Source: Octopus sinensis (lineage: Eukaryota). Taken from it: 64,000 nt of DNA. The DNA is taken from the NCBI RefSeq assembly GCF_006345805.1, contig NW_021832606.1, positions 1 through 64,000 of the forward strand, read 5' to 3'. The notes under the pieces were generated by a model. The model saw only the letters and a list, made by a program, of their open reading frames with translations, was not told where the DNA came from and ran no database searches. Shown piece after piece: positions 4,236 through 60,492 of this stretch. A program made the translations under genes and the position numbers. Numbering within the stretch: position 1 is the first letter of the stretch; each line of letters begins with the position of its first letter.

Positions 4236-5159
4236 CTATATTTTGCTAACTAAAACGAGAAAAGCAACTCCAGCCAAGGCAGAAAGCAATATTTGGAAAG
4301 TGTGTCGCATTCCCCCGACTTGGTGGGAGCCCTTTGTGAGCGGCCCGAGCATGTTTACAGTGCCGATGTATATGAACCCCCCGGTGCAGAAGGGAATCAA
4401 AACTCCCTCAATACGCGAACTCAAATTGCCCAAAACAAATGACAGGATGACGCCAAAAATGAAGCCCAGTGCCGTGACGAACTGAAGGAGTATTGCCTAT
4501 CATAAGACATGGAAACAAGCCTGCTTTTTGGTGCAATTGGCGTTGATTAGACTGACAAAGTCCCCAATCTCGTTGGGAAATTCGTGGCACAGAATAGAAA
4601 ATGACGAACTCAGTCCGAGAGATGTGCTGTGCATAAACGACGCGCCGATGATCAGCCCGTCAGTGATGTTGTGCACAAAATCCCCTACGAGGTTGATGAA
4701 TCCTTGCGCCTTCATTGAAATCTGCTCTTTCGCACTGTGCTCTGCGTCACTTTTCTCTTTCGTTCTGCGACGAATGGTTGTCGACTCCGTGACAATCGGC
4801 TCCGAAGGTTCCTCTGGGGCGTCGGTCGGGGATGCTTTGAGAGTCAAATTGAGGACTTTTTCCATAGCAAAAAAGCCATAGAGTCCCACTAAAATGAAAT
4901 ATCTGTTGTTGGCAGTGTTGGCGGTGGTGAATATTTCAGGCATCAAATGGAAAAATACGTCCGACAGCAACCCCCCGGAAGCAAAGGCGAGCAGAATCTA
5001 CGAATAGGACATTATCCATGTCACCTCCAAGGACCCGTCCCAGTTACTTTTGTTTACGCTCACGAAAATGAGGAGAAGTGCAGGCAAAATGCCGACTGTG
5101 ATTGCTGCGAGAATTGCCTGGACGATCGGGAAGTCGAGAAGGAGGTGGAGAGTGACCAT
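4236..5159 (-). CDS. LIV-1 subfamily ZIP metal transporter (SLC39A7/A13-like), multi-exon
   Basis: LLSFASGGLLSDVFFHLMPE, GDFVHNITDGLIIGASF, LCHEFPNEIGDFVSL and FYIGTVNMLG motifs; several hydrophobic TM segments. The 3' end is approximate. Confidence 0.88.
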
Positions 5160-5669: not shown

Positions 5670-7184
5670 TCATCGTAAAATATCAAACGTGTCACCATCC
5701 TCAATCATTTCACTGCAAAATGTGCGCGGCGGAGACTTGATCGGTATTTCTTCTACGACCTGATCGTCCGAATTTACAGGACGGTGGAATGTCGCATCAA
5801 TCAGAGACTGCAAAGGCGTTTGTTTCCTTTCATTGGTCGTTGAATTGAGTTGACTATTCAGCGAAGGGAGGCTGTTGAGCATTGCGAGTGGCGTCGGCAA
5901 TTTTTTAGAAACTTTCTGGATGGACTGCTTGTCTTCCATTTTTCGTTTCCTTGGCCGATAAATCGTAGGGACAGCCCGTTTATCAGGCACAATAAACGCA
6001 TAGTTCTGCTGAATCTCATTTATCTCGTCCTGAGGAGCCTGAGGAGTGGCCGGTGGAGACACTCGGTCACAGAGAATGCAGGGTTTCTGAAAACGAATAA
6101 TCGCCTGCTTTCCCGACGACTTGCGTATTTCATGCTTAAGCAACTCCGAACGTGCCATGTCCACCACACAGCTCAAAATAGAACGAGGAAACTCATCAGA
6201 ACTCCCCATTTGGGACGAAGGGGCCACCCAGTCGTACATAAGTTCGATCGGGGACTTGGAGCCGAGCATTAAGTAGACCTCCACCACCGAGAGCTGTCCA
6301 GCCTTGCCGACAGAAAGTCCTCCTTCCCACAGGGCAGTCACACTTTCGAGAGAACCAGAGAAATTGGACAAATTGCGACTCAAATTGTTGGTATTTTGGA
6401 GAATACTGGACGTGTGGGAGTCCGTGTTGTGCAGTCGAATTCTCCCAGAAGAGGACACCAGTTGGTATGCCACAGCACTCTTCCCACTCGGAAGGAACAT
6501 CCTCATGTCCCCATTCCCCAACCGTTCTCCCAACAGTTCGAGCAGCACCCCCATTTGCTGTCCGTGAGGCACTCTCAACTGCAGATTAGCCACAAAGCCA
6601 CTGCGTTGGACAGTCAGGAGAGCCTGGACAGACCGAGGACGGAGGGACAACATCAAAGTGTCAGGAAGGAAACTTGAGAGGACAGTTTCGTGTTTTTTGA
6701 ACAATTCAGAGAGAGCATTGCTTCTGGGCATTTTGACCTTCAAATACTTCTCTTTGTGGGGGATTCCGAGTCTGGCGAGTGTGTTTTTGCCCACGAGGAT
6801 GCTCCGATTAAAGACCAGTCCGTTCAGGAACTTGAGGAAATGTGGAGAAGAGTCCACCTTGCCCAGTCGACGGTACAATTCTCCGTAGGCGACGAGCACG
6901 GAGACTTGGCGAATGTCGGTGGGGACATCAGACCCGAAGGAGACATGTCCATCCAGTCGACGGAAATTACGGAAGAAAAATAGTCGAATTTGACGGACAC
7001 TTTTGGGGGGTCTTGGCCGACGTGCATAATTTATTCGTGCAGTCAGTTTGTGGAAGTCCTTTCCGTATTTGCACAAGAGTGAGTAGAAGGCAATTCGGTC
7101 CTCAGTGTCCCATATCTTGGCCACCTTGGGAGGGGGGTCTGTGGTTTGTGGGGCAGTATCTTCCGTCTTGTTGACATCCTCCAT
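5670..7184 (-). CDS. CRAMP1: Cramped-like SANT-domain chromatin protein, apparently single exon
   Basis: 506-aa ORF with WDTEDRIAFYSLLCKYGKDF...QIRLFFFR and LVAYGELYRRLG, matching the cramped SANT region; later LSLRPRS..ALLTVQ..G..ANLQL block; first ATG at 7184. Confidence 0.8.
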   Translation of the reverse strand: MEDVNKTEDTAPQTTDPPPKVAKIWDTEDRIAFYSLLCKYGKDFHKLTARINYARRPRPPKSVRQIRLFFFRNFRRLDGHVSFGSDVPTDIRQVSVLVAYGELYRRLGKVDSSPHFLKFLNGLVFNRSILVGKNTLARLGIPHKEKYLKVKMPRSNALSELFKKHETVLSSFLPDTLMLSLRPRSVQALLTVQRSGFVANLQLRVPHGQQMGVLLELLGERLGNGDMRMFLPSGKSAVAYQLVSSSGRIRLHNTDSHTSSILQNTNNLSRNLSNFSGSLESVTALWEGGLSVGKAGQLSVVEVYLMLGSKSPIELMYDWVAPSSQMGSSDEFPRSILSCVVDMARSELLKHEIRKSSGKQAIIRFQKPCILCDRVSPPATPQAPQDEINEIQQNYAFIVPDKRAVPTIYRPRKRKMEDKQSIQKVSKKLPTPLAMLNSLPSLNSQLNSTTNERKQTPLQSLIDATFHRPVNSDDQVVEEIPIKSPPRTFCSEMIEDGDTFDILR

Positions 7185-7230
7185 GACCACAAGACTTAAC
7201 TATTTAATAATTTTATTATTTTATTGAATA

Positions 7231-7307
7231 TTATTAACAGGTTTGTTTGAATTTGTAATTACTACTGTCACTGTGATCATAAATGAGAAAACTTTTCACT
7301 AAAAATT
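7231..7307 (+). repeat. Left copy of imperfect direct repeat flanking the R4-like retroelement
   Basis: TTATTAAC...ATTTGTAATTACTACT-GTCACTG...GAGAAAACTTTTCACTAAAAATT recurs at 8931..8997. Confidence 0.8.
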
Positions 7308-8930
7308 GTTTTATACGTAAATCACATAGCTGATCCCTAAGAAGGACGTGTGTGACTCCCCCAAGGATTTGAGGCCAATCTATGCCGAATTTATATAAGT
7401 TGACAACGAAATGTGTAAACATAAAGTTGTCAGAGTATATTGATGCTTTCGGATAAGTGACAATCAACTGGGCACAAGAAGAATGTGCAAAAGAACAAGC
7501 CATAATCAATCAGATCATGTTTTCTTAGACTATTTGTTACAAAAGTCTGGACTTGCTTATTGGATTGTCTGCTTTATTCAGAGTCTTATTAACAAATGGA
7601 AAATACGATTGACTTTTGAAAATAAATCATTGGGTCAAGTAAAAATAAGAAGAGGAATTTTGCAAGGAGACTTTGTCGCCACAGATCTTTGTGTTGGTAT
7701 TGGACCCTTTGAGTCGAATGTTAAATGGAAAATGCCCGAAAGTAACAATGGGGAATCGGATACCGATACTTAGGAGTTCTTGAAGATATGAACAGTAATG
7801 TCCTTAAAAAAGAAATTATGGGGAAAATTTATAATGAGGCATCCACTCGGATTAAGACGGAATTAAACTCTGTGAATTTATTTAAGGCGATAAACGAATT
7901 TTCACTCTCTCTATATAAATGATTGATATCGAGCCAGGGGAATTTGAACAAATTGACAAAAATGTCAGCAGAATTCTTACGGAGAGCCATATTCACATGC
8001 AACCGGCAAACAAAGAAAGACTATATTTACCAAGAAATAAACTTGGAAGAGGTCTCGAGTGTGTCAGTAACAAATCTGAACGAATGCTATTCCAATTTTA
8101 TCATGACTTGAAGCATAAAGCCGATTACTGCCTAAGAAGAGAGGGAATTCTACGGGTCGTCAATTCACAGAAAACTCACATGGCCACTATCGTAGAATTC
8201 ATATCCCGAAAGTACAATATCAAAAATATAAATGAACTGACAATAACTAAATTGGTGGAATTGAACATGAATATCTAATGAGGCAGATTGAAACTAAGCC
8301 ACTGCATTCTATTCTTTTCCAGTGTTTGAAGGACACTGAAGTTAATGAATCGCAGGATGGGTAGTTCATGGAAATAACTCGCCAATTAAGTTGTGGAAAT
8401 TCGAGTGGACAGAACTATTTCTACGGATACGGCTGTTTCAAACAATAAACCAGATATTTTTGTCCATGACAAGATGAGGAATACAATTACACTCATTGAA
8501 GTTGGGATTACCTCACAAAATTGCCTAAAGCAAGTTGAAGTGGAAAAGTTCCACAAATATGACCTTTGGCAAATGAATTAGGGGCGATTCATCGGGCTAG
8601 AGTGAAGATAATCCCTGTTGTACTTACTCGGGATGGAATTGTCTCAAAATTCTTCAAAAGTAATCTGGATTCTATCGCAGTGGAAGACAGAGTGAAGGCA
8701 TATATTCAAACACTCGTTTTAAGAAAAACATTGGAGAGTATGCAGGTGGAGACAAGACATGGAATATCGGTTCCCGGAGAGGAGCATGCAGTGATTGAAT
8801 GTCAACCGAAGGATTCTTCTCTACCAGGAATACGTGTACCGACTATGATAGTTGGGCATAAGAGACGAAGACTGTCCTAAATATAGATGCTTAAAAAAAT
8901 GCTATTATAAATTTTTATTACTCAATAAAA
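7308..8930 (+). mobile_element. Degraded 5'-truncated R4/Dong-like non-LTR retrotransposon (RT plus restriction-like endonuclease)
   Basis: LIPKKDVCDSPKDLRPI..PNLYKLTTKC, IRRGILQGD, RLYLPRNKLGRGL, NNKPDIFVHDK..ITLIEVGITSQ..EVEKFHKYDL, KIIPVVLTRDGIVSKF; many stops and frameshifts. Confidence 0.88.
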
Positions 8931-8997
8931 TTATTAACCTATATGTTAATTTGTAATTACTACTATATGTCACTGAGAAAACTGTTCACTAAAAATT
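8931..8997 (+). repeat. Right copy of the flanking direct repeat; contains the kinase start codon
   Basis: TTATTAAC...ATTTGTAATTACTACTATATGTCACTGAGAAAACTGTTCACTAAAAATT; ATG at 8967. Confidence 0.8.
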
Positions 8998-10279
8998 CCA
9001 ACCAACGCCAATCTCTACCCAAAAACAAAATAATTGTGTTTGATTCCGGCCCTGTCACAATTGACAGTGTGATTGGCTACGGTGATAAGAATATGTGTTA
9101 GTCACAGGCGGCTATTCGGTCATTTTTGCTGCCAAACGAAAGAAAGGCAATACCATGGCCCTCAAACAGTCCAACGTGAACACGGAAGCCAATCTAAACA
9201 GCTGCATTATGGAAATAAACGTGATGGTTTGTCCATTTCTTCATCCCAGAAAAAGTGCAGTCATCCCAACATCATTAAATACGTCGACAGTCATTACACC
9301 AAAATCGATTCCTTTCGTTCAGAAGTCTTTCTTTTGATGGAGTTGTGCAAAAGTGCTGGTTTTGTTTATTTTGTAGAAAGTGTGTTTCAGTTGTTGGAGG
9401 AGAATGCAGTCAAAGGACTCAAAGACGACCTCATTCTTCGAATCCTCAGAGACCTTTGCAGTGGACTGTCAGTCCTCCACGACAACTCTCCGCCAATCAT
9501 CAACCGAGACATCAAAGTAGTGTTTCCCTCGTGTCCAGGCCGAGAATGTGTTGATAAACTCAAAAGGAGATTTTGTCCTCTGCGATTTTGGGAGTGCTGT
9601 GTACGAGACTCCCCTCGACGAGAATATGGACATTTCGGACATTTCTCAACTGGAGGAAGAGATCGCCCAGTTGTTGTGTGTCTCACAGTCGCAGAGCCAC
9701 CACCTCGGGGTACCGACCCCCGGAAATGGTCGATTTGTACAGCGGAGAACACATTTCCTGCAAAGCTGACATTTGGGTTGTGCAGAGTTGTTGATTCGAC
9801 TAGGCTGTGGGGTGTCTGCTCTTTCAGTTATGTTTTGTCGCCATGCCCTTCCAAGAGAACAAATTGGCCATTTTGTCAGCCAAATATTCGTTTCCCAAAC
9901 CCTGCAATGCCCTGTTTGAGAGTGTCATTGGTCAGTTCTGTGGTCACTCACTTCCGTAGGGGACTGTCTCCAGGTCTCTCCCGCGAGTAGACCAAGTGTG
10001 GGGGACATTCTCAACTGCCTTAAGACTTGCACTTTGTCGAAGAAAGGCTCGAAAAAAACTAGTTTTCGCTTTATAAAACAAAAATCCGTTGATGTGAATG
10101 TTTATTGGTAGTTTGATCAGAAGCAAGTCCCCGATGATGTTTTTGAAGCAGCTCCTTTTGATTTTCCTCCAAATCCGTGGCCTTTGGACGAATCGGAGTT
10201 TGTGGCACAGGATGAGGGTGGACTCAACCCGTTTATGAACGAAGATGGATGTGTGAACGAGTCATTTAAAGATTCATGA
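8967..10279 (+). CDS. AAK1: NAK-family Ser/Thr kinase (AAK1/BMP2K-like), multi-exon
   Basis: MSLRKLF...VTIDSVIGYGGYSVIF (26-nt intron 9082..9107), MALK, HPNIIKYVDS, PPIINRDIK, VLCDFGSA, TTSGYRPPEMVDLYSG..ISCKADIW, C-terminal LNPF; stop TGA at 10277..10279. Confidence 0.85.
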
Positions 10280-10809
10280 CCTAACTTGACATATTTGTTT
10301 TATTAATTATATTTGTTATTTTTATTGGAACATTCATGTTCTGTTGACGCGACTGTATCCCTAACAATATAACGGAGTCCATTGGCTTATATAGTCATAG
10401 GAATGGAATAGTTTTTTAAGACTCCGGGTTCGGGCACGCTCGTTTTTAGGCCAATTTTCTGAAATAAGTAATTTTCAAAGGCAGACTAGATATTTCACGA
10501 CCCGGAACGGGGAATTTTTAATATTCAATTTTGCATTTTTAAAATTTTTTTAAAAAATTAACTCAAATGTATGTTGGTAACATCAATTCAATAATCGTTT
10601 AATATTTGACGATAAAAAATGAAACAGTTAAAGTAACGAGAAAATTGGATAAATTAAAAATTGTGACGCTATAATAACAGAAAATTGGGTTTCTTGTAGG
10701 CTTAAAACCACGGAAATTCCTTCAGTTCAAAGGAACTGGGATAATATTTATTGCTCACACATACTTGAAAATATTCGATTACACGTCGAACAGTCTTAAT
10801 TGGCAAGTA

Positions 10810-11040
10810 TTAATTGAGTTTGTCACCGATCTTGACAGCCGGTATGTTTCTGAACAACGAATCAGTCGCCATCGATATACGCTTTGCATTGAGATTTGCC
10901 AGCCTCATCGTTGCAGGTGTGGCAAACTCGTCGACAGGAGAACAATACAATTGTTGCTTCATCCCCTTGGCCTTCGAAACCAGTCGGATAATTGATGAAA
11001 AAGCCCTCAAGCTTTTCTCAGAAATTGGTTTAATCAATTT
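10810..11040 (+). mobile_element. CRE-like non-LTR retrotransposon 3' remnant
   Basis: Frames give ICQPHRCRCGKLVD (zinc knuckle) and FIPLAFETS..ALKLFSEIG, typical of CRE-clade endonuclease C-termini; the middle part is deleted. Confidence 0.55.
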
Positions 11041-11349
11041 TGAAAATTATTAGTCAATTATCCATTTTTTTCAATTTTTACATTTTTTGTAAAATTAATC
11101 CGAAAGTCGTTTTTTATTCATTGAGCCGAAAATCGTAATTTTCGTAAAATGAAGGAGATACTTGAAAATTTTCTTAACATTTCGTTTACGACATGTTTAT
11201 TAGTTCTTTATAATGGTGTCCTCAATTGTTACGGGATCACAAATCTTTTCAATATGATTCCAACAGTTCAATATTAAATGTTCCTCTACTCTTAGAAATG
11301 AATTCATCATAAATTCAGTATGTATAAATTAGAATTAGTTGCTCCTAAA

Positions 11350-12640
11350 AACAACCGAAATCTCCTCAAGGCCTCGCTATCTCTCAATGATCTTGTTTTT
11401 TAAATCAGAGTGATTTCCCGATAAATCCCGAGGTCTCTACCGTAATCGGCATGAAAGGGTGATCTTTTGATGAATATTCAACGGAGACTACTTTATTTAT
11501 AGAGGAGTGTCCCCACGTCTTATTAAGATGCTACGGAGGGTTGAGTTTATTAGCAGTTAATAGAGGGTGTGATCTGCTGGTCGTCGCTTCCCTTCCCCAG
11601 ACAAGTAGTGTTCACACACCTGCTTCCGATTAGACAAATTTTGTTGTCTTACTAATGCACTCGTCTAACCAAAACTTTTATTTAAAGTACGACTCAGAAA
11701 CAGTTTTATTGCTTTTGGGGTGACCAGAGTTGTGAAGTATCATTTTGAACATTTTATCAACGTATAGTTTGTTATTGTTGTAGTACTCCTCTCTGCTTTT
11801 TGCAGTGTCACTACAATTACTCACAGACATACATCTGCTGGGTGATGTCACGCACTTTATTTCCCTGTTTTCTGCTATGTTTCAACTCGTCTCTCAATTC
11901 GCGTATTTTCTGACGAATTTTCATTTGGCTCTCCTCATTGTCCGACTCTAACTCCGCCATTTTGGATGCCAGCCGGTCTCTTTCCTTCCTGGTCCTGATT
12001 TCGTCTTCTCGTAAACTATTGAGTTTCTTTCTGTGCCACATTTGAGAGCGTTGGATTGCATTCTATTTATGCCCGTATCCATGGAATATACCACACCACT
12101 ATTCTTGGTTGACTGGTTATTTTATTGGTCATTAATCATGTGCTTGATCAAGTGAGGACAGAGGTTGGCTTCCGCCTTTATTTATATGAAATCAAAGACC
12201 GCCGTCAGTCCTGGGATTCCCTCAAGCAAACATACCAAATCCAAAAAGATGAAGCATAGCTAACAACATTGAGACACCACAGTCTCTCCAGAATAGTAGA
12301 AGGCCAGCAAAAGTGCCCCATCATCCTCGACTTTCGGGGAGGACATTGTCAAAGAAATCTGTCGGAGGAACAAATGTTGTCCCACTCTCTCTTTATGCTA
12401 GTATTTAACCAGATTTGTTGAGCGCTGATCTGGCCGATATTACACAGGATGACTAAGCACCTTCTTTTCGAAAAAGGAAAAAGGGAAACTTCCCTGTCCA
12501 ACTGGTGTGCTCCCGAGAAACTATCCTTATTAAATGGCAATAGAATATTCTGTTGACCTCATACCTTAGAGTAGAACGTCTCCTTTCTCGCGTTAATGTC
12601 TGACCTCATATCCCTGGCTATATAATGCTAGTTTATCGTA
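11350..12640 (-). CDS. Putative multi-exon coiled-coil protein, unknown family
   Basis: ORF 11817..12041 is strongly heptad and charged (REDEIRTRKERDRLASKMAELESDNEESQMKIRQKIRELRDELK). Flanking GC-richer blocks have GT-AG mini-introns. Boundaries are approximate. Confidence 0.4.
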
Positions 12641-12688: not shown

Positions 12689-13559
12689 TCATTGAGAAGG
12701 ACGACAGACAACGTGAAGAAATCCGTCTGGGTAGAGCATATTCTCAACCAACCACCGAATACTCACAGTGAGGGGGACGATTACTCCGTGAATCAACCAA
12801 TCCAGACCTTCCCCCTCCAACTGGACTAAAAATAGTCACAACTAGTCTACAAGTCCGGATAATCTCCCCAAATGTAGACTCATCGATGCGATGGGAGATC
12901 TGTCGGTACTCATCCCTCCCCGTCTACTCTCTCTCCACACCACCAACCCTGTAAACTCGGAGGGGCACCCGAGAAGTGGAATGGTCGACAGTCCTAATCT
13001 GCCGAGCCAGTGTGTTGTACCCTCCAAAATCACCTGGAAATAAAGACAGACAACCAACCCTGCAGAAGGCAGTGCCACAACTGACTCTTGTCGTTGAAGG
13101 TCATTCTGTTTTGGACAGCGAAGGTGTCTAGAAGGCAGGCAGCCTCTTTGAGTGTGTGGAAATACAGTCGGCTCATTGCCTCGTCGGACTGGACGTAGAT
13201 TATGTTGGCCAGTGGGTAGTTCTGGAATACTCGGAGACCACCACCTCCACATGCAGTCGGAGACTCCACACGGTGGATCCGCCGTACAGGTCGTGGAGGA
13301 GACCGGTCGGGTAGTCCCAGCGGATTGCCCTCCCTTTCCATTCCAGCCACATTTGCTTGGAATATTCCTTCAATTTGTCTTCTCTGATGGAATGGAAAAA
13401 GTGGGAGAGCAGTTCCTTCTTGAGGAGGACGAGGTAGGACACTCGGGGGAGAAGAGCAATGTAGGGAAGGCACATCTTGGACTCGACTTGGTTGCTGAGG
13501 TTGATAGAAACTGTAATTCTCTGATTCCAAATTTCTGTTTGTATTTCAGTGGAGTCCAT
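12689..13559 (-). CDS. ATG5: Autophagy protein 5, multi-exon
   Basis: EIWNQRI..PYIALLPRVSYL..WLEWKGRAIRWDYPTGLLHDL, LKEAACL, VPLRVY, C-terminal LIHGVIVPLTVSIRWLVENMLYPDGFLHVV. Confidence 0.93.
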
Positions 13560-13637: not shown

Positions 13638-16600
13638 ATGGATAGACTGCTCTATGCAATTTCTCTCCTCAGAAACGAGGAGACCGACGAGGACATTGAT
13701 CCCCGTTTTTTCCGTCGTTCGCCCAATTCCTGGCACTCCTTCTCCACTCACCTGAGAATGTCCTCGTTATTCGACCGCACATTCCTGGAAAGGGCACTCA
13801 GGGACATACTCAATGTGGCACATCAAAGTTAGTTCAGTCATTTCAAATTAGTTTCCACCAACCAAGTCGAGCAAGTGGCACTATTTATTGCCCACAGTCT
13901 GTGGACCGTCGACTTTCTCTCTCCACAAGTTCTCCTCTCAATCAACCAGAATGAGTATATCCACCACGTCTCCGCCAAACAACTCGAATCTATTTTTAAG
14001 GACATCCAAGTCCTCAGAAAATGTCCACTTCCAGCCTCAAATGGACCGAATCCCACAAGTAAGGTCACTGACCAACCCAGTCGAGACCGGACTGAGGGAC
14101 CGCACCTTCCACGTGACCGACATTGGTCTCAGTTCGGAGTCGGAAGAGTCGGGGACGGAAAACTGCGGAAAAGGGTGGCTGAGGTCGTCGCTCGAGGAGT
14201 TCAAAAACGTCGACTTTTCCGCGGAGGAACTCCACGGTTTGGTGATTGGTATTCTCTCGTCGACGGAAAACGTGGAGGAAATACAAAATCACGTTTTTTG
14301 AGATATATTTTGGTAGTTGTTTGATCTGTTGGGGTTTGAGGGGTTTGATTTGATTGTGAGAATTATCTCAAATCGTGATTCTCTCGTCAGTCCCCCTGAA
14401 GCTGTTTCCAGAACTAAAAAAACCAAAAAACCCATCAAATCCCAGCCAAAAAACAAGCAAACTTGTTCGACCATTCCTTCACTCCTCGAAATCCGGTTTT
14501 CCTGTTTTGAATATTCCAGAAAGTACATTTCCCAGACAGGCCAGGTGTGTCTGCCGAATGTGTTCGATTCGAATGTCTACCAACAAAACGACCTCGTTTG
14601 TCCATGTGGTAAAACTGACAGAAACTGCCCGTTTCGTCAGTCCATCGAAACACTGAGAAATACGAACGTTTTGACGTGTTTCCCCCCGAATCAGCCGGGA
14701 AGGACCAATTTTCAATAACGAATGTTCCACGGCTGTTGATAGAGGACTTGGATGATGTATTGGACGAGTGTGACTCCCAGATGGTGCAGAGGGCATTCCA
14801 GGGAGTGCCAGCTCTCAACTGCATTCAGTCGACTGTCTTTGAGACTGTGATGAACAGTCAGGAGAATGTGCTCATTTCTGCCCCCACGGGAGCTGGAAAG
14901 ACCAACATTGCCCTGTTGGCCATCCTCAGTAGACTCAGGGATCACATAAATCACCGGAAACTGCCCATCGAGGATTTAAAAGTGGTCTACATCGCCCCAA
15001 TGAAGGCCTTGGCTTCCGAGATTACTGCCAAATTCGCAGATCGACTAACCCCGTTTGGATTGTCAGTCCGCGAGTTGACAGGAGACATGCAACTGACGAG
15101 GAAAGAAGTGTCTTTGACTCAGGTGTTGTCCAAATGTGGATATTCAGGTATTTGTGGTCACCCCGGAGAAACTGGACGTGGTGTCGCGGAAGGACGTGGA
15201 CATTGGAATGACGGACAGTCTCTCTATTCTCTCCAAAATGACTCTCCTTGTCATCGACGAACTTCAACTACTGGCGGACACTCGTGGATCAGTTTTGGAG
15301 ACACTCGTCGCCAGAATTCTACGACTGGTGGAGAGCAGTCAGCGTGTGATCAGGATTGTGGGACTGTCGGCCACTCTCCCCAACTATTTGGACATTGCTT
15401 CCTTTCTGCGAGTCAATTTTAGTAGTGGACTGTTCGTGTTTGATGGGAGGTTTCGTCCTGTGCCCCTCACGCAGTCCCTCGTGGGGGTCAAGACGCATTT
15501 TCCCCGAGAGACTGAGAAGAATATAAACCACATCTGTTTTAACGAAGTCACTCGTTTTGTGGGGGGAGGCCATCAGGTTGGGCAGTGGATATACCCAAGG
15601 TCATGGTTTTTGTCACTTCGAGGAACGGAACTGTCAAAACAGCCACCACTCTTCTGGAAATGGCCGAAACTGGAGGCCAGACTGGGCTGTTCGTTGTCCC
15701 TCCGTCTCCAGCACTTGCCCTGGCCATTAAACACGTAGAGGCTAATCTGGACTTGTTAGATGGACAAGTCTCGAATGAGTGAACTTGGTCGTCTGTTCCG
15801 AGCTGGGTTTGCAGTCCACCACGCGGGGATGAGTCGTTCTGACCGAAATGCAGTAGAAAAGTACTTTCGAGAAGGACTGGTGAAATGTCTCGTGTGCACT
15901 GCCACGTTAGCTTGGGGAGTCAATTTGCCTGCCCACGCTGTCATCATCAAGGTTGAGAGACCTGCCTTGAGTGGAAGGGAACTAACATTTATGACTCAAA
16001 GTCGAGTTCCTTTGTGGACATGAGTGTTCTGGATGTCCTGCAGATATTCGGGAGAGCAGGGAGGCCTCAGTACGACGAGTCCGGACAGGGGATACTCATC
16101 ACTGAACACTCCTCACTCTCCTCCTACCTGCAGGTGGTTGGGGCCAACTCCCCCATCGAAAGTCGTTTCCTCGAGACAATCGACGACAATTTGAACGCAG
16201 AAGTATTGAATGTGTCCAAAGGGGACTAGATTGTGTTGGGGACAGTCACCAATGTCAGTGAAGCCATTCAGTGGCTTAAATACAGCTATTTCTACGTCCG
16301 TCTTCTGGCCAATCCCACCGTCTATGGAGCTTCCTATGCCCAGTTGCTGGTTGTCTCCTGTCCTCAACTCAGATGGACAACACACTGTCGGACCACTGCA
16401 GACAAATCATCACCAAGGCAGGACACTCTCTGGACGGAGCTCAAATGATTCGATTCGACGAGGTGCACTCTTATTTCTTTTCGACTGATTTGGGGCGGAC
16501 TGCCTCCCATCTGTACATCAGCACTGCCACTATTCGAGTAGAGTTGGCAGTTCAGTGTAGATCATCAATGACACTTTTAATGACAAGGTCGACCAGAAGG

Positions 16601-19600
16601 GGGTTCTTTCCGTCATTGCCTCAGCCACGGAGTTTGACCAGATCAAAGTGAGGGTTGAGGAGTGCGACGAACTGGAAATGTTGGAAAAGTGTTGTCCCTA
16701 CGCTCTCTCCACATCCGCCCTGTCCAAGGAGGGGAAGGTCAACCTGTTGTTGCAGGCCTACATCTGCCAATTTGACCTCAGGACATCTTCTCTCCTTTCA
16801 GACCAACAGTATTGTGTGCAGGTATTGACAGTGGTCGACCTGGAAGAACGCCAGTCGACTAGCCCGGGCACTCTTCGAAGTTGCCGACCGAAATGGTTGG
16901 GCCAACTGTTCGTGGATTGTCCTCTCGTTCGGACAGTGTCTGGATCGAAGGCAGTGGACATTTGAATCCCCTTTGAAACAATTCGACGAGTTGTCCTCCA
17001 CTGTTTTGGGACACATAAGGCGGACCAGACTCGACTATGACCGAATTGAGAGCATGGAAGCAAAGGAGATAGGTTGGGTGGTGTATTGAGGACAGGCGTG
17101 GTCGTGCATAATGTCGACTGTGGTCGGGTAGTCAAACAACTCAACTCGTCATTGCCCATGGTTGAGGTGGAGGCGACAATCCAGCCAATCACCCACACAA
17201 TTCTTCGCATCCGAGTGGACGTCACTCCTTCTTTCCGGTGGAACGACAAGGTGAGTATTCTCCACATGTCCAGTTTCATGGAATAGAGTCGGCTTCCTCT
17301 GAGATATATCAGATTTGGGTGACCGACGTCGAGAGCGACCGTATTTACCACTCGGAGACACTCTGCATTAAAAAGAAGCAAGTCATTTCGAAGGAGGTCG
17401 TCCATTTGGTGTTGACTGTGCCCATATTCGAGCCAATTCCTCCGCAGTACTTTGTGCATGTCGTCTCCAATCGGTGGATTGGGGTGGCCACGACTTGTCC
17501 CGTCTCCTTCGACAAGCTGATTCTCCCAGACTCGTCGTATTCCCACACGGAGTTACTCGACCTCCAGCCACTGCCTGTGACTGCCCTGGGAAATAAGGAA
17601 TTCGAGTCTCTGTACACGTTCAGTCACTACAACCCCATCCAAACACAGGTCTTCCACACAGTCTACCACACCGACCACAATGTGCTTTTGGGGGCACCCA
17701 CTGGCTCGGGGAAGACCAATGTGGCTGAAATGGCCATTTTACGTGTTTTCCGCAAATACCCTTCATGTCAGGTATTCCTTTCACTGTAATATAGTGCGTG
17801 TATATTGCCCCTCTCAAAGCACTTGTCCGAGAGAGATTGGCTGACTGGAGTGGACGAATAGGCCAAAAATTGAACAAGAGGTGGTGATTAGACTGAACAT
17901 TGACAAGGGTGGTGGAATTGACGGGAGACACCAGTCCCGACGGGGATGTCCTGCGACGGGCCGACCTGATTGTGACGACGCCTGAGAAGTGGGACGGGAT
18001 TAGTCGTAGTTGGCAGTGTCGCAGTTATGTCCGGAATGTGGCACTCATTTGCATTGACGAAATACACCTGCTTGGTTGGCTTCTCTGTTTTCCTACTGAA
18101 GGGGAGGAGAGGGGACCAGTCCTCGAAGTCATTTTGTCCCGACTTAATTTTATTGCTCACGAAACACGTCAGAATGTGCGTGTTATTGGTCTGTCGACTG
18201 CCCTGGCTAATGCGATTGACATTGCCACTTGGCTGTCCATCCCCAAACAAGGATTGTTCAACTTCCGGCCTTCCGTCCGTCCAGTCCCCCTGGAAGCACA
18301 CATCTCCGGGTTCCCAGGGAAGCACTACTGTCCTCGCATGGCCTCGATGAACCGAGCCTGTTTCCGGGCCATCCAAGTGCACTCCCCCAACAAGCCTGTC
18401 CTCATTTTTGTGTCCTCTCGGAGACAGACTCGACTGACTGCGTTGGCCTTGGTCTCTCTTCTGGCCTCCGAGTCTGATAACCTTCGATCGTGGCTGCATA
18501 CGTCTGAATCGGAGGTTGTTGGGGAGTTTGTGAGTACTTAGATCGAGTCTCTCAAGGTGGAGGACGCCAACCTAAGTTTAACACTCCCCTTCGGAGTGGG
18601 AATCCACCACGCAGGGTTGGTCACCTCGGATAGGGAATTGACAGAAAGACTGTTTGTTAGTTCAAAAATCCAAGTTTGTGGGATGTTTGATTGGCAGATT
18701 CTCGTGTCGACAGCAACTCTGGCCTGGGGGGTCAACTTCCCGGCACACCTCGTCATTGTGAAGGGGACGGAATACTTTGACGGGGCGACCAAGAAATATG
18801 TCGATTTCCCCGTGACGGACCTCCTCCAGATGATGGGGAGGGCAGGTCGTCCCCAGTTCGACCAGTGTGGAGTCGCCTGTATTTTCGTCCAAGATATCAA
18901 AAAGATTTTTTATAAAAAGTTTTTGTACGATCCTTTCCCGGTCGAGTCAAAGTACTCTTTTTTATGTCACAAAGTCTTTCCGCCGTTCTCCCCGAACATA
19001 TCAATGCAGAGGTCGTGGCAGGGACAGTTCGTAGTCTTCAAGAAGGAGTTGACTTTCTGACCTGGACGTACTTTTACCGTCGAATTCTGAGCAACCCAAA
19101 GTTGTTGTTCTTTGGCTATTCAAGTTATTATGATCTGAATTCGGTCGAGCCGGAGAACGTGAGTTCCCACTTGTCCCAACTGGTGGAGACGTCTGTGTCG
19201 ACTCTGTGTTGTCATCATTGCGTGGAAGTGGACGAGGAGGGAGGGTATTCCCCTCTCCCGGCGGGGTCGATCTGCTCGTTCTACTACCTGGACCACCGGA
19301 CGATGGGCATGTTCGTGGAGAATGTGGTGGAAGACATGTCCTTTGACTGTCTCATATACACTCTCTCGGTTGGCTTCTTTCACTCACACATAAAGATGGC
19401 CAAAGAGTTTGATGAGATTCCAGTGAGACATAACGAGGATAAACTCAATGCTGAGTTGGCCGGGGAGTTGTCGTTGAGTGTGAAAGACCCAGAATCCCCC
19501 AACACGAAGGCCTTTCTCCTCCTCCACGCCCATTTGACTCGACATTGCTTTTCCTGCGTGGATTACGTGACGGATTGCAGGACAGTGGTCGATCAGACTA

Positions 19601-20313
19601 TTCGAATTCTACAAGCTCTTATTGACTGGTCTGTCCACGAGGGGTACGTTCTAACCACCCTTCGTTCTATTCTTCTTATTCAGTTGATTGTCCAAGCACT
19701 GGTGCCATACGAGAGGAGTATTCTGAGTATTCCCAACATTGATCATTCGAATGTCGCCTTTTTCATGTTTGTCATTCCATTCATTACTTCTAGGCAGTGT
19801 TTCAAAGGAAGAACTGAACTGCCTATTCTGTTTGAGTGTTTAAAGACAGACCGACATCATTTTGTCGAGTTGGTGGGCAATTGTTTGTCTCAAAGCAAAT
19901 GTGTCAAGGCAATCGAGTTCATCGAGCGCCTCCCAATTGTGGAGACAATCATACGAGTGAATAACACTCCACTGATGGAGGGAGGAGTGTCTGTTGTACA
20001 TGGAGACGAGTGTGTTCTCCGTGTTAAACTTTATAACATTAACCGACTTGTATTTTCTGTCATATTGACTGTAGGTTCCTGGGTTGGAGATGTTTAGTCC
20101 TCGCATCGGTAAGCCAAAGAGTGGTGGCTGGTTTCTTTTATTAGTGGATGGAACGAGGGGGACTGTTCTCGATGTGTTAAACGGGAGAGGTATGTCAGTG
20201 AAACAGCCTCGGTTATGTTTACTGTCAAGAATAAGCATTCTGTCTTGTACGTATTGAGTGATACTTTTGTGGGGATTGACCAGCAGTATGATATATTCGT
20301 GGAGTATCACTAG
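13638..20313 (+). CDS. ASCC3: ASCC3 (Slh1/HELIC1) double-cassette Ski2-like helicase, many mini-introns
   Basis: Two helicase cassettes (APTGAGKT and APTGSGKT) with Sec63 domains. ASCC3-type strings: [52 protein letters not shown]; ends [18 protein letters not shown]. Confidence 0.93.
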
Positions 20314-27304: not shown

Positions 27305-27749
27305 ATCTCCAATGTCCACTTCAATTCATAGAACTAAAAAACGACGAAGAACTGAAAATAAAATTTAAAAATGAAAACCTGACACAATTCTGGGGATAAA
27401 AATCTATAAAAATGAAATTCTCGAAATTATGGGAAAAAATGATGCCAATAATATTATGTTTTCCTACGTCATACTGCGTAGAGAGAGGATTCAGCACTCT
27501 GAATAGTATGCTCGGAAAAAAAAGAAACAAACTAAATATAGAAGAAAGAGGCGACATTAGAATTACACTTACGAAAAGAAGTACAAATTTTAAAAAACTT
27601 GTCAATCTTCATCAACCACAAGGATCTCATTAAAACTCTTATTTTTTAAATAAAAATTTTTACTAATGAAATAAGGGGGCGATATAAAAATTGGAGGGGC
27701 GAAAAAAAATCCAAGGGGGCGATACAAAAATAAAGGTTGAGAACCACTG
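27305..27749 (+). mobile_element. hAT (Buster/Charlie) transposon 3' fragment with TIR
   Basis: Dimerisation domain FPTSYCVERGFSTL...KRNKLNIEERGDIRITLT..LHQPQGSH*; GGGGCGA subterminal repeats; ends GGTTGAGAACCACTG. Confidence 0.85.
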
Positions 27750-33145: not shown

Positions 33146-33264
33146 ATCGCACGATCATGCTTAGTCGTAAATACCCGTTCCCATCCGAACACGGCAGTTA
33201 AGCGATTACAGGCTGTTCTAGTACTTGGCTGGGTGACCGCCTGGGAACAAACAGTGTCGTACAA
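33146..33264 (+). rRNA. 5S: 5S rRNA gene, solitary
   Basis: About 119 nt with CCGAAC, GTTAAGC and TAGTACTTGGCTGGGTGACCGCCTGGGAAC conserved blocks; helices II-V pair; followed by TTTTT. Confidence 0.9.
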
Positions 33265-33269
33265 TTTTT
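33265..33269 (+). terminator. Pol III oligo-T terminator
   Basis: TTTTT immediately after the 5S 3' end. Confidence 0.75.
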
Positions 33270-38271: not shown

Positions 38272-39139
38272 CAGGCATTCTCAACCTTTTTTTGTTCATC
38301 GCCCCCTTAGATATTTTATCGCCCCCCTTTGAAATTTTATCGCCCCTTTGTCCATATACAATTTAAAAATTTTTGGGCATTGTCCCTTAATTGGTTGTTT
38401 TTTGTATATAACTCAAAAATCAAAATATAAAATAATAAATCAAATGTAAAAAATTGAATTTTTATTAAAAATTATTAGTGAGACTTTTGATATTGATGTT
38501 TACTCGCTAAATATTCTATGTCGGGTTTAAATCCCATTAAAACAGCTTTACTATCTACAATGACGCTTTCATCAATTTGTAATGAAAACTTACTTCGCTT
38601 CAGTCTTTCAATAAGGATTTCCTCTACATTGTCACCCATTTCATCAATACTTTGACGAATCACCTGAACGTGTTAGTTAATGATTAAGACGTTGTGCGCA
38701 CCCACAACTACATATAAATAAATGTTAAATAACCATCATGTACTGGCTTTGTGAATAACGATTTGATCGTTTTCTTATTTTCAAAATTGTATTTTAAATT
38801 TTGAAAATATTCAATCGGCTTTGACATTTTATCCGGGTGCTTGCGTTTTAGATGATCCTGTAATCGTGATGGCTTCATCGCCTCATTTGAGAAAGAACAT
38901 TGACAAATAAGACAATAAGGCTGTTTTGTATCTTCAGTACTTTGAATAAACCCATATTTTAAATATTCGTTTTGATAATGACGACTTTTCTTATTTGAGC
39001 GAAAAGACATCTTAGATACCAAACAAGAATGTAAAAACAGCGTGCTATTTTAAAATCGCCCCCTTGTAAAAAATTATCGCCCCCCTGTACAAAATTTTCG
39101 CCCCTAGGGGGGCGATTCGCCCCCGGTTGAGAACACCTG
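38272..39139 (-). mobile_element. Internally deleted hAT Buster element with TIRs and perfect 8-bp TSD
   Basis: TSD GTTTAGAC on both sides; TIRs CAGGCATTCTCAACC / GGTTGAGAACACCTG; ATCGCCCC subterminal repeats; BED finger (YLKYGF..PYCLIC..MKPSRLQDHLKRKH) and FSLQIDES joined directly to the C-terminus. Confidence 0.95.
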
Positions 39140-40244: not shown

Positions 40245-41142
40245 TTATTTATGCAGTTTAAACTGGCTACCCTGATGGATTAGTAATTCAAAAAAAGCAT
40301 TAGTGAGAGACCAGCCTAGAACAGCCCTAAAGGCATTAGTACTCACTCCACGGAAGAAGAGAGCCTTGGACATGTCTCTCTGCTGAATGATGATGCGATA
40401 CACAGCGAAAATAGACAAGAAAGTGCCGTCTATTCTCTGCTGCATATTCACCCTCACCACATTGAACGGGTAGAAGACAGTGCTGATGAATCCCCCACAA
40501 AGAGCACCGTACCACAAACTCCTCCAAATAGAGTACTCCTCCCCCATAAAGTGCTCTCGTGGTACAAAAAACATGACATTGGACAAACAGTTCCTTGCAG
40601 CAATGGCCGACCAGCCACGGTAAAACTCACTCAGTCCTGCACGCCGCCTAGCACATGCGCCAGCTGAGGATACCGAAGGACGAGGGCAGTGTGGAGGGTG
40701 TTCCTCAGCCGACTGTGGTTGGCCCGGTCTTGTAGGAGTACTTGGATTCGTTCGAACGGGCACAGAATCGACTCAATCAGTCCGGCCGATGAGGCTGCCA
40801 GTGCCTGATTGGCCATGTGGTGTCGTCCTTGGCTTAATTTGTCCAGTTTTTGTAGCAGGAGATTGTAGAATCCGAACATGAGGGTCATTGAGGTCGTTTT
40901 CTGGAGAAGAGGGGGCATTAGGCCTGGATTGTTGGTGTTTATGGCATACCTCTGTACAGGAGAGTGATTCCGTCTTCTTTCACGTTACGGAGGGCCTTGG
41001 AAATGGAATATCCGTGCATTTGTTGGCGGGCCACTACTTTGGCCACCGGGTAGGTCACGATTATGCTGAAGAAGGATGCCCCCATTCCGCAGAGAAAGTG
41101 CTGATGGATGTTGTCGGCTTTCTTTCGAGAGATGTCACTCAT
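40245..41142 (-). CDS. SLC25A51: Mitochondrial NAD+ carrier SLC25A51/MCART1
   Basis: HFLCG..TYPVAKVVARQQMHG, PPLLQKTTSMTLMFG, CPFERIQVLLQD, EFYRGW..ARNCLSNVMFF, YPFNVVR and FRAVLGWSLTNAFFE match SLC25A51. Confidence 0.92.
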
Positions 41143-49319: not shown

Positions 49320-52300
49320 TGTCACAGGGTGATCAGACCCCTATGGGCAACCTGGCCTTTACGTGTTTCCATGGCAACTACATAGCAAATTTACAAAAGG
49401 CCACTAAAATAAAGGCAATCGATCCGAACTAATGATTGAACTTTAAATTTTTGAGAAAATGATGTTTTATATTTGAACCATGCTTGCTTTAAAATAATAA
49501 AATTCTTTACAACATTAGCAATTATAACGTGAATATTTTTTATTTTTGATAATATAAATTGCAACTTAGCAATTATAATTTACATCAATTTTTTGCAAAG
49601 TTTGTAACAACTTTAACTCTAACCCAAACCCTAACGTTGGCAAGTGACAACATAAATATTCAAAATCTAACCTAACCTAATCCAAACCCTAACGTTGGCA
49701 AGTGACAACATAAATATTCAAAATCTAACCCTAACATTAATCCAAACCCTAACGTTGGCAAGTGACAACATAAATATTCAAAATCTAACCCTACATTAAT
49801 CCAAACCCTAACGTTGGCAAGTGACAACATAAATATTCAAAATCTAACCCTAACATTAATCCAAACCCTAACGTTGGCATGACAACATAAATATTCAATC
49901 TAACCCTAACCTTAACCAAACCCTAACGTTGGCAAGTGACAACATAAATATTCAAATCTAACCCTAACATTAATCCAAACCTAACGTTGGCAGTGACAAC
50001 ATAAATATTCAAAATCTAACCCTAACATTAATCCAAACCCTAACGTTGGCAAGTGACAACATAAATATTCAAAATCTAACCCTAAATTAATCCAAACCTA
50101 ACGTTGGCAAGTGACAACATAATATTCAAATCTAACCCTAACATTATCCAACCCTAACGTTGGCAAGTGACAACATAAATATTCAAAATCTAACCCTAAC
50201 CTTAATCCAACCCTAACGTTGGCAAGTGACAACATAAATATTCAAAATCTAACCCTAACATTAATCCAAACCCTAACGTTGGCAAGTGACAACATAAATA
50301 TTCAAAATCTAACCCTAACCTTAATCCAACCCTAACGTTGGCAAGTGACAACATAAATATTCAAATCTAACCCTAACCTTAATCCAAACCCTAACGTTGG
50401 CAAGTGACAACATAAATATTCAAAATCTAACCCTAACCTTAATCCAAACCCTAACGTGGCAAGTGACAACATAAATATTCAAAATCTAACCCTAACCTAA
50501 TCCACACCCTAACGTTGGCAAGTGACAACATAAATATTCAAAATCTAACCCTAACATAATCCAAACCTAACGTTGGCAAGTGACAACATAAATATTCAAA
50601 TCTAACCCTAACTTAATCCAAACCCTAACGTTGCAAGTGACACCATAAATATTCAAAATCTAACCCTAACATTAATCCAAACCCTAACGTTGGCAAGTGA
50701 CAACATAAATATTCAAAATCTAACCCTAACATTATCCAAACCTAACGTTGGCAAGTGACAACATAAATATTCAAAATCTAACCTAACATAACCAAACCCT
50801 AACGTTGGCAAGTGACAACATAAATATTCAAAATCTAACCTAACCTTAATCCAAACCCTAACGTTGGCAATGACAACATAAATATTCAAAATCTAACCCT
50901 AACATTAATCCAAACCCTAACGTTGGCAAGTGACACATAAATATTCAAAATCTAACCCTAACCTTAATCCAAACCCTAACGTGGCAAGTGACAACATAAT
51001 ATTCAAAATCTAACCCTAACATTAATCCAAACCCTAACGTTGGCAAGTGACAACATAAATATTCAAAATCTAACCCTAACCTTAATCCAAACCCTAACGT
51101 TGGCAAGTGACAACATAAATATTCAAAATCTAACCCTAACCTTAATCCAAACCCTAACGTTGGCAAGTGACAACATAAATATTCAAAATCTAACCCTAAC
51201 CTTAATCCAAACCCTAACGTTGGCAAGTGACAACATAAATATTCAAAATCTAACCCTAACCTTAATCCAAACCCTAACGTTGGCAAGTGACAACATAAAT
51301 TTCAAAATCTAACCCTAACCTTAATCCAAACCCTAACGTTGGCAAGTGACAACATAAATATTCAAAATCTAACCCTAACCTTATCCAAACCCTAACGTTG
51401 GCAATTGACAACATAATATTCAAATCTAACCCTAACATTAATCCAACCCTAACGTTGGCAAGTGACAACATAAATATTCAAAATCTAACCCTAACCTTAA
51501 TCCAAACCCTAACGTTGGCAAGTGACAACATAAATATTCAAAATCTAACCCTAACATTAATCCAAACCCTAACGTTGGCAAGTGACAACATAAATATTCA
51601 AAACTCTAACCCTAACCTTAATCCAAACCCTAACGTTGGCAAGTGACAACATAAATATTCAAAATCTAACCCTAACATTAATCCAAACCCTAACGTTGGC
51701 AAGTGACAACATAAATATTCAAAATCTAACCCTAACCTTAATCCAAACCCTAACGTTGGCAAGTGACAACATAAATATTCAAAATCTACCTAACCTTAAT
51801 CCAAACCCTAACGTTGGCAAGTGACAACATAAATATTCAATCTAACCCTAACATTAATCCAAACCCTAACGTTGGCAAGTGACAACATAAATATTCAAAA
51901 TCTAACCCTAACATTAATCCAAACCCTAACGTGGCAAGTGACAACAAAATATTCAAAATCTAACCCTAACATAATCCAAACCCTAACGTTGGCAAGTGAC
52001 AACATAAATATCAAATCTAACCCTAACATTAATCCAAACCCTAACGTTGGCAAGTGACAACATAAATATTCAAAATCTAACCCTGACCTTAACCCAAACC
52101 CTAACTCGAATTAAATGATGTTTCTGCTGACGATTCTTCAGACATTTTTTACAAAAATTGGAAGCCTTTTTGGCCACCGGTGTTTGCTTCGAGCATTCAT
52201 ATCCTCCGGGAATATCCCGATTAACGCTTCCTTAATTTGATTGTATTCGTTATATATTTCTGACGTAACCCTTAAACCCAGACATCACAAAGTGTGAGTA

Positions 52301-60041: not shown

Positions 60042-60492
60042 GGGTTTTCGGATCAATATAATAATTTTTCGAACCAATATAATAACTTTTCGAATCATAT
60101 AAAAATTTTTCGAACCAATATAATAATTTTTCGAATCAATATAATAATTTTTCGAATCAATATAATAATTTTTCAAATCAATATAATAATTTTTCGAATC
60201 AATATAATAATTTTTAAATTCAAAGAAATTCAAAGAAAAAAAGATCAAAAAGAGTAAATTATCGTTATTCTTGAATCACTTCAGAATTTGAGCATCTATT
60301 CAAATACGTTAACATCTTTCTGTAGAAGGATCCGCAATGTTCACTTGTTAAGCTTTATCATTATGCAAAGCTTCCAGATTTCTAAAATTTGTTGCATATT
60401 GTCTTCTGCTTTCTATAGTTGAAACTGAGTTTCTTCTTGGTTCGAACAATTATTATATGATTCGAAAAATTATTATATTGATCCGAAAACCC
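60042..60492. mobile_element. Nested foldback-like element whose TIRs are built from 21-bp repeats
   Basis: TA|GGGTTTTCGGATCAATATAATAATTTTTCGAA...TTCGAAAAATTATTATATTGATCCGAAAACCC|TA; 8 units in the left arm and about 2-3 in the right. Confidence 0.75.

Follow-up and report, generated by a model that had tools for sequence, protein, structure and literature searches.

A degenerate LINE with a restriction-like endonuclease between divergent CRAMP1-like and AAK1-like genes, and the probable long target-site duplication around it

Long target-site duplications have been described for some long interspersed nuclear elements (LINEs). R9 LINEs of bdelloid rotifers are flanked by duplications of 126 bp, and for Dualen-4b of Chlamydomonas, followed in mutation-accumulation lines, the median length of the duplications was 900 bp; the great length was attributed to the distance between the two strand cleavages (PMC9977147). 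For Utopia elements duplications of 0 to 20 bp, varying with the lineage, were reported, together with a precise 3' junction and a variable 5' junction (PMC4640811). The locus presented here lies in a stretch of 64,000 nucleotides (positions 1 to 64,000 of contig NW_021832606.1, assembly GCF_006345805.1, deposited as Octopus sinensis), which was analysed as a whole and is called the window in the following. Between two divergently oriented genes, one CRAMP1-like and one coding for an AAK1-like kinase, it contains the degenerate remnant of a LINE with a restriction-like endonuclease (RLE), and this remnant is enclosed by an imperfect direct repeat. We consider it probable, with a likelihood of roughly 0.7, that the repeat is a long target-site duplication, which arose from staggered nicks when the RLE-type LINE was inserted between the two genes. 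The event is of an ordinary kind in an unusually tight spot, i.e., a known type of insertion footprint that calls for no new mechanism.

The direct repeat had been noticed in a first-pass annotation of the letters, and it proved to be real. The local alignment of 7200-7307 with 8902-8997 reached a score of 87, far above that of shuffled sequences (21 +/- 3, maximum 36), and two of its blocks, the 17-mer AATTTGTAATTACTACT and the 24-mer TGAGAAAACTKTTCACTAAAAATT, are present at no more than two places each within the 64 kb, against a chance expectation of about 0.05 and 0.00 occurrences, respectively. No further copy of the repeat sequence was found in the window or in 153 kb of contigs carrying related elements, and once the element part 8902-8931 is excluded, the flanking repeat is unique host sequence. 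The palindrome GTAATTAC is kept in both repeat copies; it was considered as a general promoter motif and rejected, as it is confined to these two copies and found nowhere else in the window. Concerning the extent of the repeat, which had been given as 67-77 bp and possibly about 100 bp, a duplication of at most 66/76 bp (right and left copy, respectively; Table 1) could be retained, with 57 of 62 aligned bases identical, and the extension to about 100 bp had to be given up. The latter is not duplicated host sequence, because 8902-8931 belongs to the element: it is the family's own conserved 3' terminus, which recurs nearly unchanged at five unrelated places in related contigs. Within the maximal duplication four of the five mismatches crowd into 5 nt at the boundary, which favours the shorter core of 54/64 bp, in which 49 of 50 aligned bases are identical and indels of 2, 4 and 12 nt occur. 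To judge from the alignment, the host duplication probably measures 54/64 bp, and the element probably ends at 8943. The right copy comprises the last 23-35 bp before the kinase ATG and 31 nt of coding sequence (10 codons and one base).

That a retroelement remnant separates the two genes was likewise borne out by six-frame translation, as the plus strand encodes what is left of a reverse transcriptase and an endonuclease. Present are the reverse transcriptase from its first motifs on, which includes ...RGILQGDFVA..., the PD-(D/E)XK part and a 3' untranslated region with AATAAA at 8924-8929. The remnant shows at least four frame changes plus stops, and by an internal deletion of about 250 bp at ~8380 the CCHC finger was lost, the nuclease part being kept. 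All of its closest relatives are situated on unplaced contigs of 27-850 kb of the Octopus sinensis assembly GCA_006345805.1, here termed L001-L008 (VCDQ01003768, VCDQ01000770, VCDQ01000515, VCDQ01012182, VCDQ01005537, VCDQ01012903, VCDQ01011117 and VCDQ01002782, in this order). Nucleotide identity to the copies on L001, L002, L004, L005 and L007 amounts to 83-96%, and at the amino-acid level the remnant is 81-91% identical to uncharacterised proteins encoded on contigs of Octopus sinensis. In these relatives the reverse transcriptase is recognised by Pfam (RVT_1, E = 2.8e-20 in the L008 copy; PF00078 in the proteins P0006 and P0013), and the C-terminus carries the CCHC finger C.HC...K.TVDHLATRC followed by the nuclease motif KPDIFV.DK...ITLIEVGITS...EK..KY. 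A family profile built from them gave weak matches to R2 proteins in PDB, among them the R2Bm nuclease region (E = 0.003-0.05); P0013 alone gave no match in PDB. In the one near-full-length copy, which stands on L008 and belongs to a sister subfamily, neither APE (apurinic/apyrimidinic endonuclease) nor any other Pfam domain was matched by the 308-aa open reading frame (ORF) ahead of the reverse transcriptase. On the grounds of these motifs the element is classified as a RLE-bearing LINE, and the earlier designation as 'R4-like' is accepted at this level only (RVT_1, CCHC finger, nuclease motif).

The L008 element (8079-11682) consists of three largely open ORF segments; its 5' start (TATTCTCTCTTATTCT) recurs near its own 3' end, and a Tc1/mariner transposase (HTH_Tnp_Tc3_2, DDE_3) is located just upstream of it at 6635-7640. 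In the window itself a second, distant RLE-type LINE is represented by a 3' fragment on the plus strand, from 62296 to ~62840, with ~48-69% amino-acid identity to the family.

Both copies of the repeat directly adjoin the element, the left one at 7307/7308 and the right one at 8931-8943. The 3' terminus reads ...TTATTACTCAATA(AAAT), and the right repeat begins 0-12 nt beyond it; an end of the form ...GATGCTTAAAAAA(A)TGCTATTATAAATTTTTATTACTCAATA(AAAT) is common to the window, L001, L002, L005 and the two copies on L007 (L007a and L007b). The following segment 8932-8943 (TATTAACCTATA) agrees at 9-10 of 12 positions with what comes behind ...CAATAAAAT in L007a and L007b. The element ends ...CTCAATAAAAT(+/- 12 nt) without a poly(A), and the A-run at 8893-8899 is internal. 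To regard this run as a poly(A) tail, with a duplication of ~96-108 bp from 8902 onwards, was ruled out by the conservation of 8902-8931 at other loci. On the other side the left repeat stops at 7307 and the element begins at 7308 (GTTTTATACG...), from where it is co-linear with L001; in this longer copy the reading frame extends ~150 bp further 5' (...REIINGDFTLNDWFYTGITYLLPKKD...). At the 5' join of the window element, target and element share the 3-nt microhomology ATT. An intact 3' end in combination with a truncated 5' end is typical of insertions of retrotransposons without long terminal repeats (non-LTR), and together with a unique repeat that adjoins both ends it gives the arrangement to be expected when staggered nicks accompany target-primed reverse transcription.

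From the repeat, its abutment on the element, the element type and the decay, the positions of the nicks and the consequences for the two genes may be reconstructed as follows. The LINE would have entered a spacer of ~82 bp between the divergent genes through target-primed reverse transcription. Of the two strands, the bottom one would have been nicked first, 23-35 bp upstream of the start codon of the kinase, at a position that corresponds today to 7231-7243 (left) and 8932-8944 (right), and the top strand 54-66 bp further on, 31 bp within the kinase coding sequence. Fill-in of this long stagger would have duplicated the interval, resulting in 7232/7244-7307 and 8932/8944-8997, and an early stop of reverse transcription would have caused the 5' truncation at 7308. 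Finally, the 5' join would have been made via the ATT microhomology, perhaps with the help of a longer imperfect match between target and element.

Table 1. Coordinates of the features at the insertion locus (positions in the window).
Feature	Position	Strand	Basis and remarks
CRAMP1-like ORF	5670..7184	-	ORF list and phmmer; ATG 7184..7182; ORF open to 7190
Unduplicated CRAMP1-side spacer	7185..7231 (to 7243 if element ends at 8943)	.	AT-rich part 7200-7238
Left repeat copy	7232..7307 (core 7244-7307, 64 bp)	+	ends exactly at the 5' truncation point of the element
Orphan start ATG AGA AAA CTT TTC ACT AAA AAT...	7283..7333	+	reads MRKLFTKNCFIRKSHS*, enters LINE
Degenerate RLE-type LINE, 5'-truncated	7308..8931 (probably to 8943)	+	six-frame translation, alignments of relatives
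Right repeat copy	8932..8997 (core 8944-8997, 54 bp)	+	begins after the 3' end of the family
In-frame upstream ATG (MLICNYYY-MSLRKLF...)	8943..8945	+	ORF 8943..9101; element/target junction
Kinase exon 1 (MSLRKLFTKNSNQRQSLPKNKIIVFDSGPVTIDSVIG)	8967..9077	+	reading frames; MSLRKLFTKN...

The identity of the two flanking genes was already proposed in the first-pass annotation and is supported by database relatives. The CRAMP1-like ORF on the minus strand (504 aa) has 124 distant relatives in phmmer, the best at E = 1.6e-14, and its residues 18-230 align to residues ~110-330 of proteins that bear the name 'protein cramped(-like)' or 'SANT domain-containing'. The kinase gene on the plus strand, which starts with MSLRKLFTKN at ATG 8967, matches Pfam Pkinase with E = 1.5e-32 when its exons are joined, and the best database relatives of the protein are AAK1-like, with 36-51% identity. 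Past exon 1 it has introns of ~20 and 23 nt, and exons of the kinase domain continue to ~9960. Its catalytic loop at ~9490-9520 (+) reads INRDIKVEN, so that Asn stands at the place of His in the usual HRD motif; both the VAIK-type lysine and the DFG motif are kept. Both host ORFs are intact and the LINE between them carries stops, frameshifts and the ~250-bp deletion, from which it follows that the insertion has long been tolerated. The distance from ATG to ATG, now 1,782 bp, would have been ~82 bp before the insertion (98 bp if the left copy is used) and thus below the 1 kb between divergent starts by which bidirectional promoters are recognised.

For the two genes the consequences of such an event would be unequal. 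The geometry agrees with the earlier suggestion that a target-site duplication carried the kinase start, as the right copy holds ATG 8967 and the first 10 codons; because the second nick would have lain inside the kinase gene, these codons would have been retained through the duplication alone. CRAMP1 would have kept everything that formerly lay upstream of it and would have gained a defunct duplicate of the kinase start, and the kinase would have kept just 23-35 bp of native upstream DNA, which now stand behind the LINE 3' end. The further suggestion that one shared promoter of ~100 bp was split into two copies misdescribes the event, since 23-35 bp of the ~82-bp spacer were duplicated, plus 31 bp of coding sequence, and the 47-59 bp beside CRAMP1 were left unduplicated. 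As to the putative rescue of both genes, the evidence consists in their ORFs having stayed intact while the element decayed, which would be consistent with it. A more far-reaching version appears doubtful to us, namely that an insertion of 1.6 kb into a shared control region of 82 bp was survivable only through the unusually long staggered cut, that the left copy serves as the distal promoter of CRAMP1 and that transcription of the kinase starts inside the LINE 3' end or shortly behind it, possibly with use of the ATG at 8943.

The start codons of the two copies need to be distinguished with care. The orphan ATG that had been claimed for the left copy does exist (ATG 7283, Table 1), its A being the last base of the 12-nt segment peculiar to this copy (TGTGATCATAAA). 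The kinase ATG 8967 is found in a 4-nt segment peculiar to the right copy, and the two ATGs occupy non-homologous positions. If the ancestral site held both segments, it would have read ATG TCA CTG TGA, a three-codon upstream ORF, followed by ATG AGA AAA... (MRKLF), and the upstream ATG would have come in frame with the kinase when the right copy lost 12 nt. A different in-frame ATG, which is formed at 8943 at the junction of LINE and target, would, if used, prefix the kinase with MLICNYYY; in the alignment of the two copies no ATG is present at the matching position on the left. Animal NAK kinases start with MKKFF..., and the reconstructed MRKLF start resembles this; the RKLF start of the kinase is hence presumably old host sequence.

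Several observations speak against a target-site duplication or at least complicate it. An orthologous or empty site was sought via the proteins, and none was found: the CRAMP1 ORF had no relative in a word-indexed protein search and its product no exact look-up match, the protein search yielded nothing closer than 51% identity for the kinase, the metagenome scan for host genes gave no match, and host-gene homology was absent from the related contigs carrying the LINE. The left boundary of the duplication is ambiguous (7232 or 7244), and on the CRAMP1 side 7200-7238 resembles the 3' end of the element somewhat beyond comfort for pure chance. Furthermore, 7275-7307 aligns weakly with L001 just upstream of the truncation point (24/33 with gaps, anchored p ~0.012), and this alignment takes in the 12-nt segment peculiar to the left copy, a likeness that the simple stagger model does not predict; the more distant copy on L008 shows no likeness to 7275-7307. 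It may reflect an imperfect homology by which the position of the 5' join was guided, or a coincidence, rather than an origin of the left copy from the element. A 5' end of the element at 7275 was considered and set aside as the principal reading, as in 7284-7307 agreement with the kinase start extends to 23 of 24 positions versus ~15 of 22 for L001. Lastly, the duplication is 3-5 times as long as the two other lengths measured in the LINE group, and a recognisable duplication is absent at four further copies.

These lengths derive from the comparison with other copies that the first-pass annotation had proposed, which covered nine other copies or fragments, L002 and L008 alone being usable. 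At L002 a perfect target-site duplication of 12 bp was found, and the near-full-length element on L008 has a candidate duplication of 18 bp (17/18 identical), so that the same kind of footprint at both loci supports the target-site duplication in the window. The latter is long for its group, and the best flank-repeat score among the other copies was at most 34 versus 62 here. The length of the duplication may therefore be variable within the group, or the event in the window may be an outlier (n = 2-3). However, a duplication of 54-66 bp is long for this LINE group and not for RLE LINEs generally; it is not unprecedented, since R9 and Dualen make longer ones.

Among the other explanations, it is possible, albeit unlikely, that the LINE landed beside an older, nearly wholly truncated relic of its own family (7200-7243), or at a site pairing with its 3' end. 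This refines the target-site explanation, as the 54-bp duplication would stay a target-site duplication and part of the CRAMP1-side spacer would be old LINE. It is suggested by 3'-end-like sequence preceding L007a (score 41, abutting) and L007b (19/21, ~55 nt upstream), and by the sequence T[AT]TT[AT]AC[CT]T[AT]TA, which directly follows ...AATAAAAT in three of six copies: L007a continues with TTTTAACTTTTA and L007b with TATTTACTTATA, and L001, L002 and L005 differ. However, the sample is small and the sequence AT-rich, nothing comparable is found upstream of L001, L002, L004 and L005, and on L007 the flanks give the impression of a rearrangement (P a Q ... Q b P), perhaps from another cause. 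The more far-reaching version mentioned above could be taken further: if the AT-rich 3' end of the family pairs with the DNA and thereby directs the choice of targets, the occurrence of 3'-end-like sequence ahead of three copies would be accounted for. Concerning L007 itself, copy a (9712-10586) and copy b (17566-17802) of the family stand 7 kb apart with swapped flanks, TATTTACTTATAAC being found before copy a and after copy b (14/14) and TTTTAACTTTTAA after a and before b (13/13); tandem dimers, target preference or rearrangement are possible reasons.

Improbable is the assumption that the repeat unit does measure ~100 bp and includes the LINE 3' end, the element and the first host bases having been tandemly duplicated after a plain insertion and most of the upstream element copy having been deleted later on; 3' end and host would then remain on the left, and element, 3' end and host on the right. 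The best local alignment does span 7200-7307 and 8902-8997, and 7200-7238 versus 8902-8938 gives a score of 32, which is extreme among the 5,114 positions scored in the window. However, identity is uneven, with ~80% and three gaps in the part resembling the 3' end versus 98% in the host part, although the products of one event should diverge evenly, and two precise rearrangements would be required versus one. The anchored p for 7200-7231 against the LINE 3' terminus is just ~0.03, and in a sliding scan, in which 7200-7238 scored 32 against the LINE 3' end, unrelated AT-rich sites reached maxima of 33-37. As measured by these scores, the likeness of 7200-7231 to the LINE 3' end appears no better than the AT-rich background and is unproven.

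We deem it very improbable that the left copy goes back to the 5' end of a reverse-transcribed kinase mRNA, which was joined to the LINE cDNA by template switching and inserted as a chimera without any duplication. Template jumps are known from reverse transcriptases of the supergroup of this LINE, as in R2, a microhomology of 3 nt with the element marks the end of the left copy, and the copied piece has no intron by which DNA could be told from mRNA. However, the chimera would have had to land precisely where transcription of the copied gene begins, since the right-hand homology would otherwise not set in at the 3' end of the element, and the template switch is needed at an internal point 54-66 nt from the 5' end of this mRNA. 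Hardly credible at all is a tandem duplication of the 54-66-bp segment that predated the LINE, for which no specific support was obtained: the insertion must have hit one position in ~120, namely the junction of the copies, and left no duplication of its own, and the window holds no other sign of tandem duplication at this place.

The origin of the window deserves attention. Dicyema japonicum inhabits O. sinensis, in whose renal sac it is found, and has a genome of 67.5 Mb with 49% repeats, a mean intron length of 38 bp and 36.7% GC (PMC6736024). The introns of 20-23 nt in the window, the location of the LINE relatives on octopus contigs with compact genes (on one of these contigs a gene of 292 aa lies within 1,017 bp) and the traits of D. 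japonicum lead to the reading that the window and the related octopus contigs are most likely dicyemid, i.e., contamination of the octopus assembly by the renal parasite. Unplaced contigs of the public octopus assembly, which have both the LINE family and repeats in common with the window, would accordingly carry dicyemid-like sequence. Beyond the dicyemid-like copies, the next closest relatives of the LINE are found in microsporidia (Hamiltosporidium, Vairimorpha apis, Enteropsectra) with 33-63% identity, among the proteins P0011, P0015, P0021 and P0026-P0051; this similarity hints at an element common to parasites of invertebrates. The literature on microsporidian transposons contained no clade assignment for the LINE.

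The gene neighbourhood of the window is that of a normal compact eukaryotic genome. Near the locus a ZIP zinc transporter (4500-4970), ATG5 (13030-13530) and a helicase of the Brr2/SNRNP200 type (DEAD, Sec63; 14676-20097) were found, and a mitochondrial carrier at 40245-40763. A complete 5S rRNA gene is present at 33147-33265 (+) in an AT-rich, gene-poor stretch (Rfam, 95.6 bits). Repetitive sequences comprise a 60-bp satellite at 49620-52105 (42 copies, 94% identity), the unit of which holds two AACCCTAAC motifs (telomere-like CCCTAA) and to which the GC skew of -0.51 between 50 and 52 kb is due. In addition, a 21-bp tandem array of eight copies (60045-60215) has an inverted partner 220 bp away (60437-60489), a pair also found in L002 at 8589-8889, and three short arrays of ATCGCCCCCC or its complement are located at 27669-27733, 38298-38346 and 39055-39104.

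If the locus is interpreted correctly, a by-product of LINE integration would decide whether an insertion into essential, tightly packed control DNA survives, the duplication having preserved the start codon of one gene and the upstream region of its neighbour. Transcript data from the locus could reveal the minimal promoter requirements in dicyemids.

In comparison with known systems, the locus shares with R9 and Dualen a RLE element flanked by a host duplication far beyond the usual 5-20 bp. However, R9 is site-specific in 28S ribosomal DNA (rDNA) with a constant 126 bp, whereas the family in the window shows variable lengths and, here, a unique intergenic spacer as target, and Dualen carries an APE domain, of which none was found in the LINE group of the window (L008 ORF, Pfam). 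The architecture is that of R2, R4, NeSL and Utopia, i.e., a single ORF that encodes a reverse transcriptase and, behind it, a CCHC finger and a PD-(D/E)XK nuclease; these elements are mostly target-specific (rDNA, spliced-leader genes, U2, microsatellites), in contrast to the six 3' flanks compared here, which have at most a loose AT-rich motif in common. LINE-1 elements, which possess an APE nuclease and a poly(A) tail, produce 5'-truncated insertions joined at microhomology; the LINE in the window is likewise 5'-truncated with ATT shared at the junction, but it is devoid of a poly(A) run. As with transposons in compact bidirectional promoters, the divergent starts, presumably ~82 bp apart before, are now separated by 1.78 kb and both ORFs are intact; here, however, the bidirectional promoter is a putative one, and only about a third of the spacer was duplicated. 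Provided that the repeat is indeed a target-site duplication, a non-site-specific RLE LINE would join the short list of elements with long target duplications.

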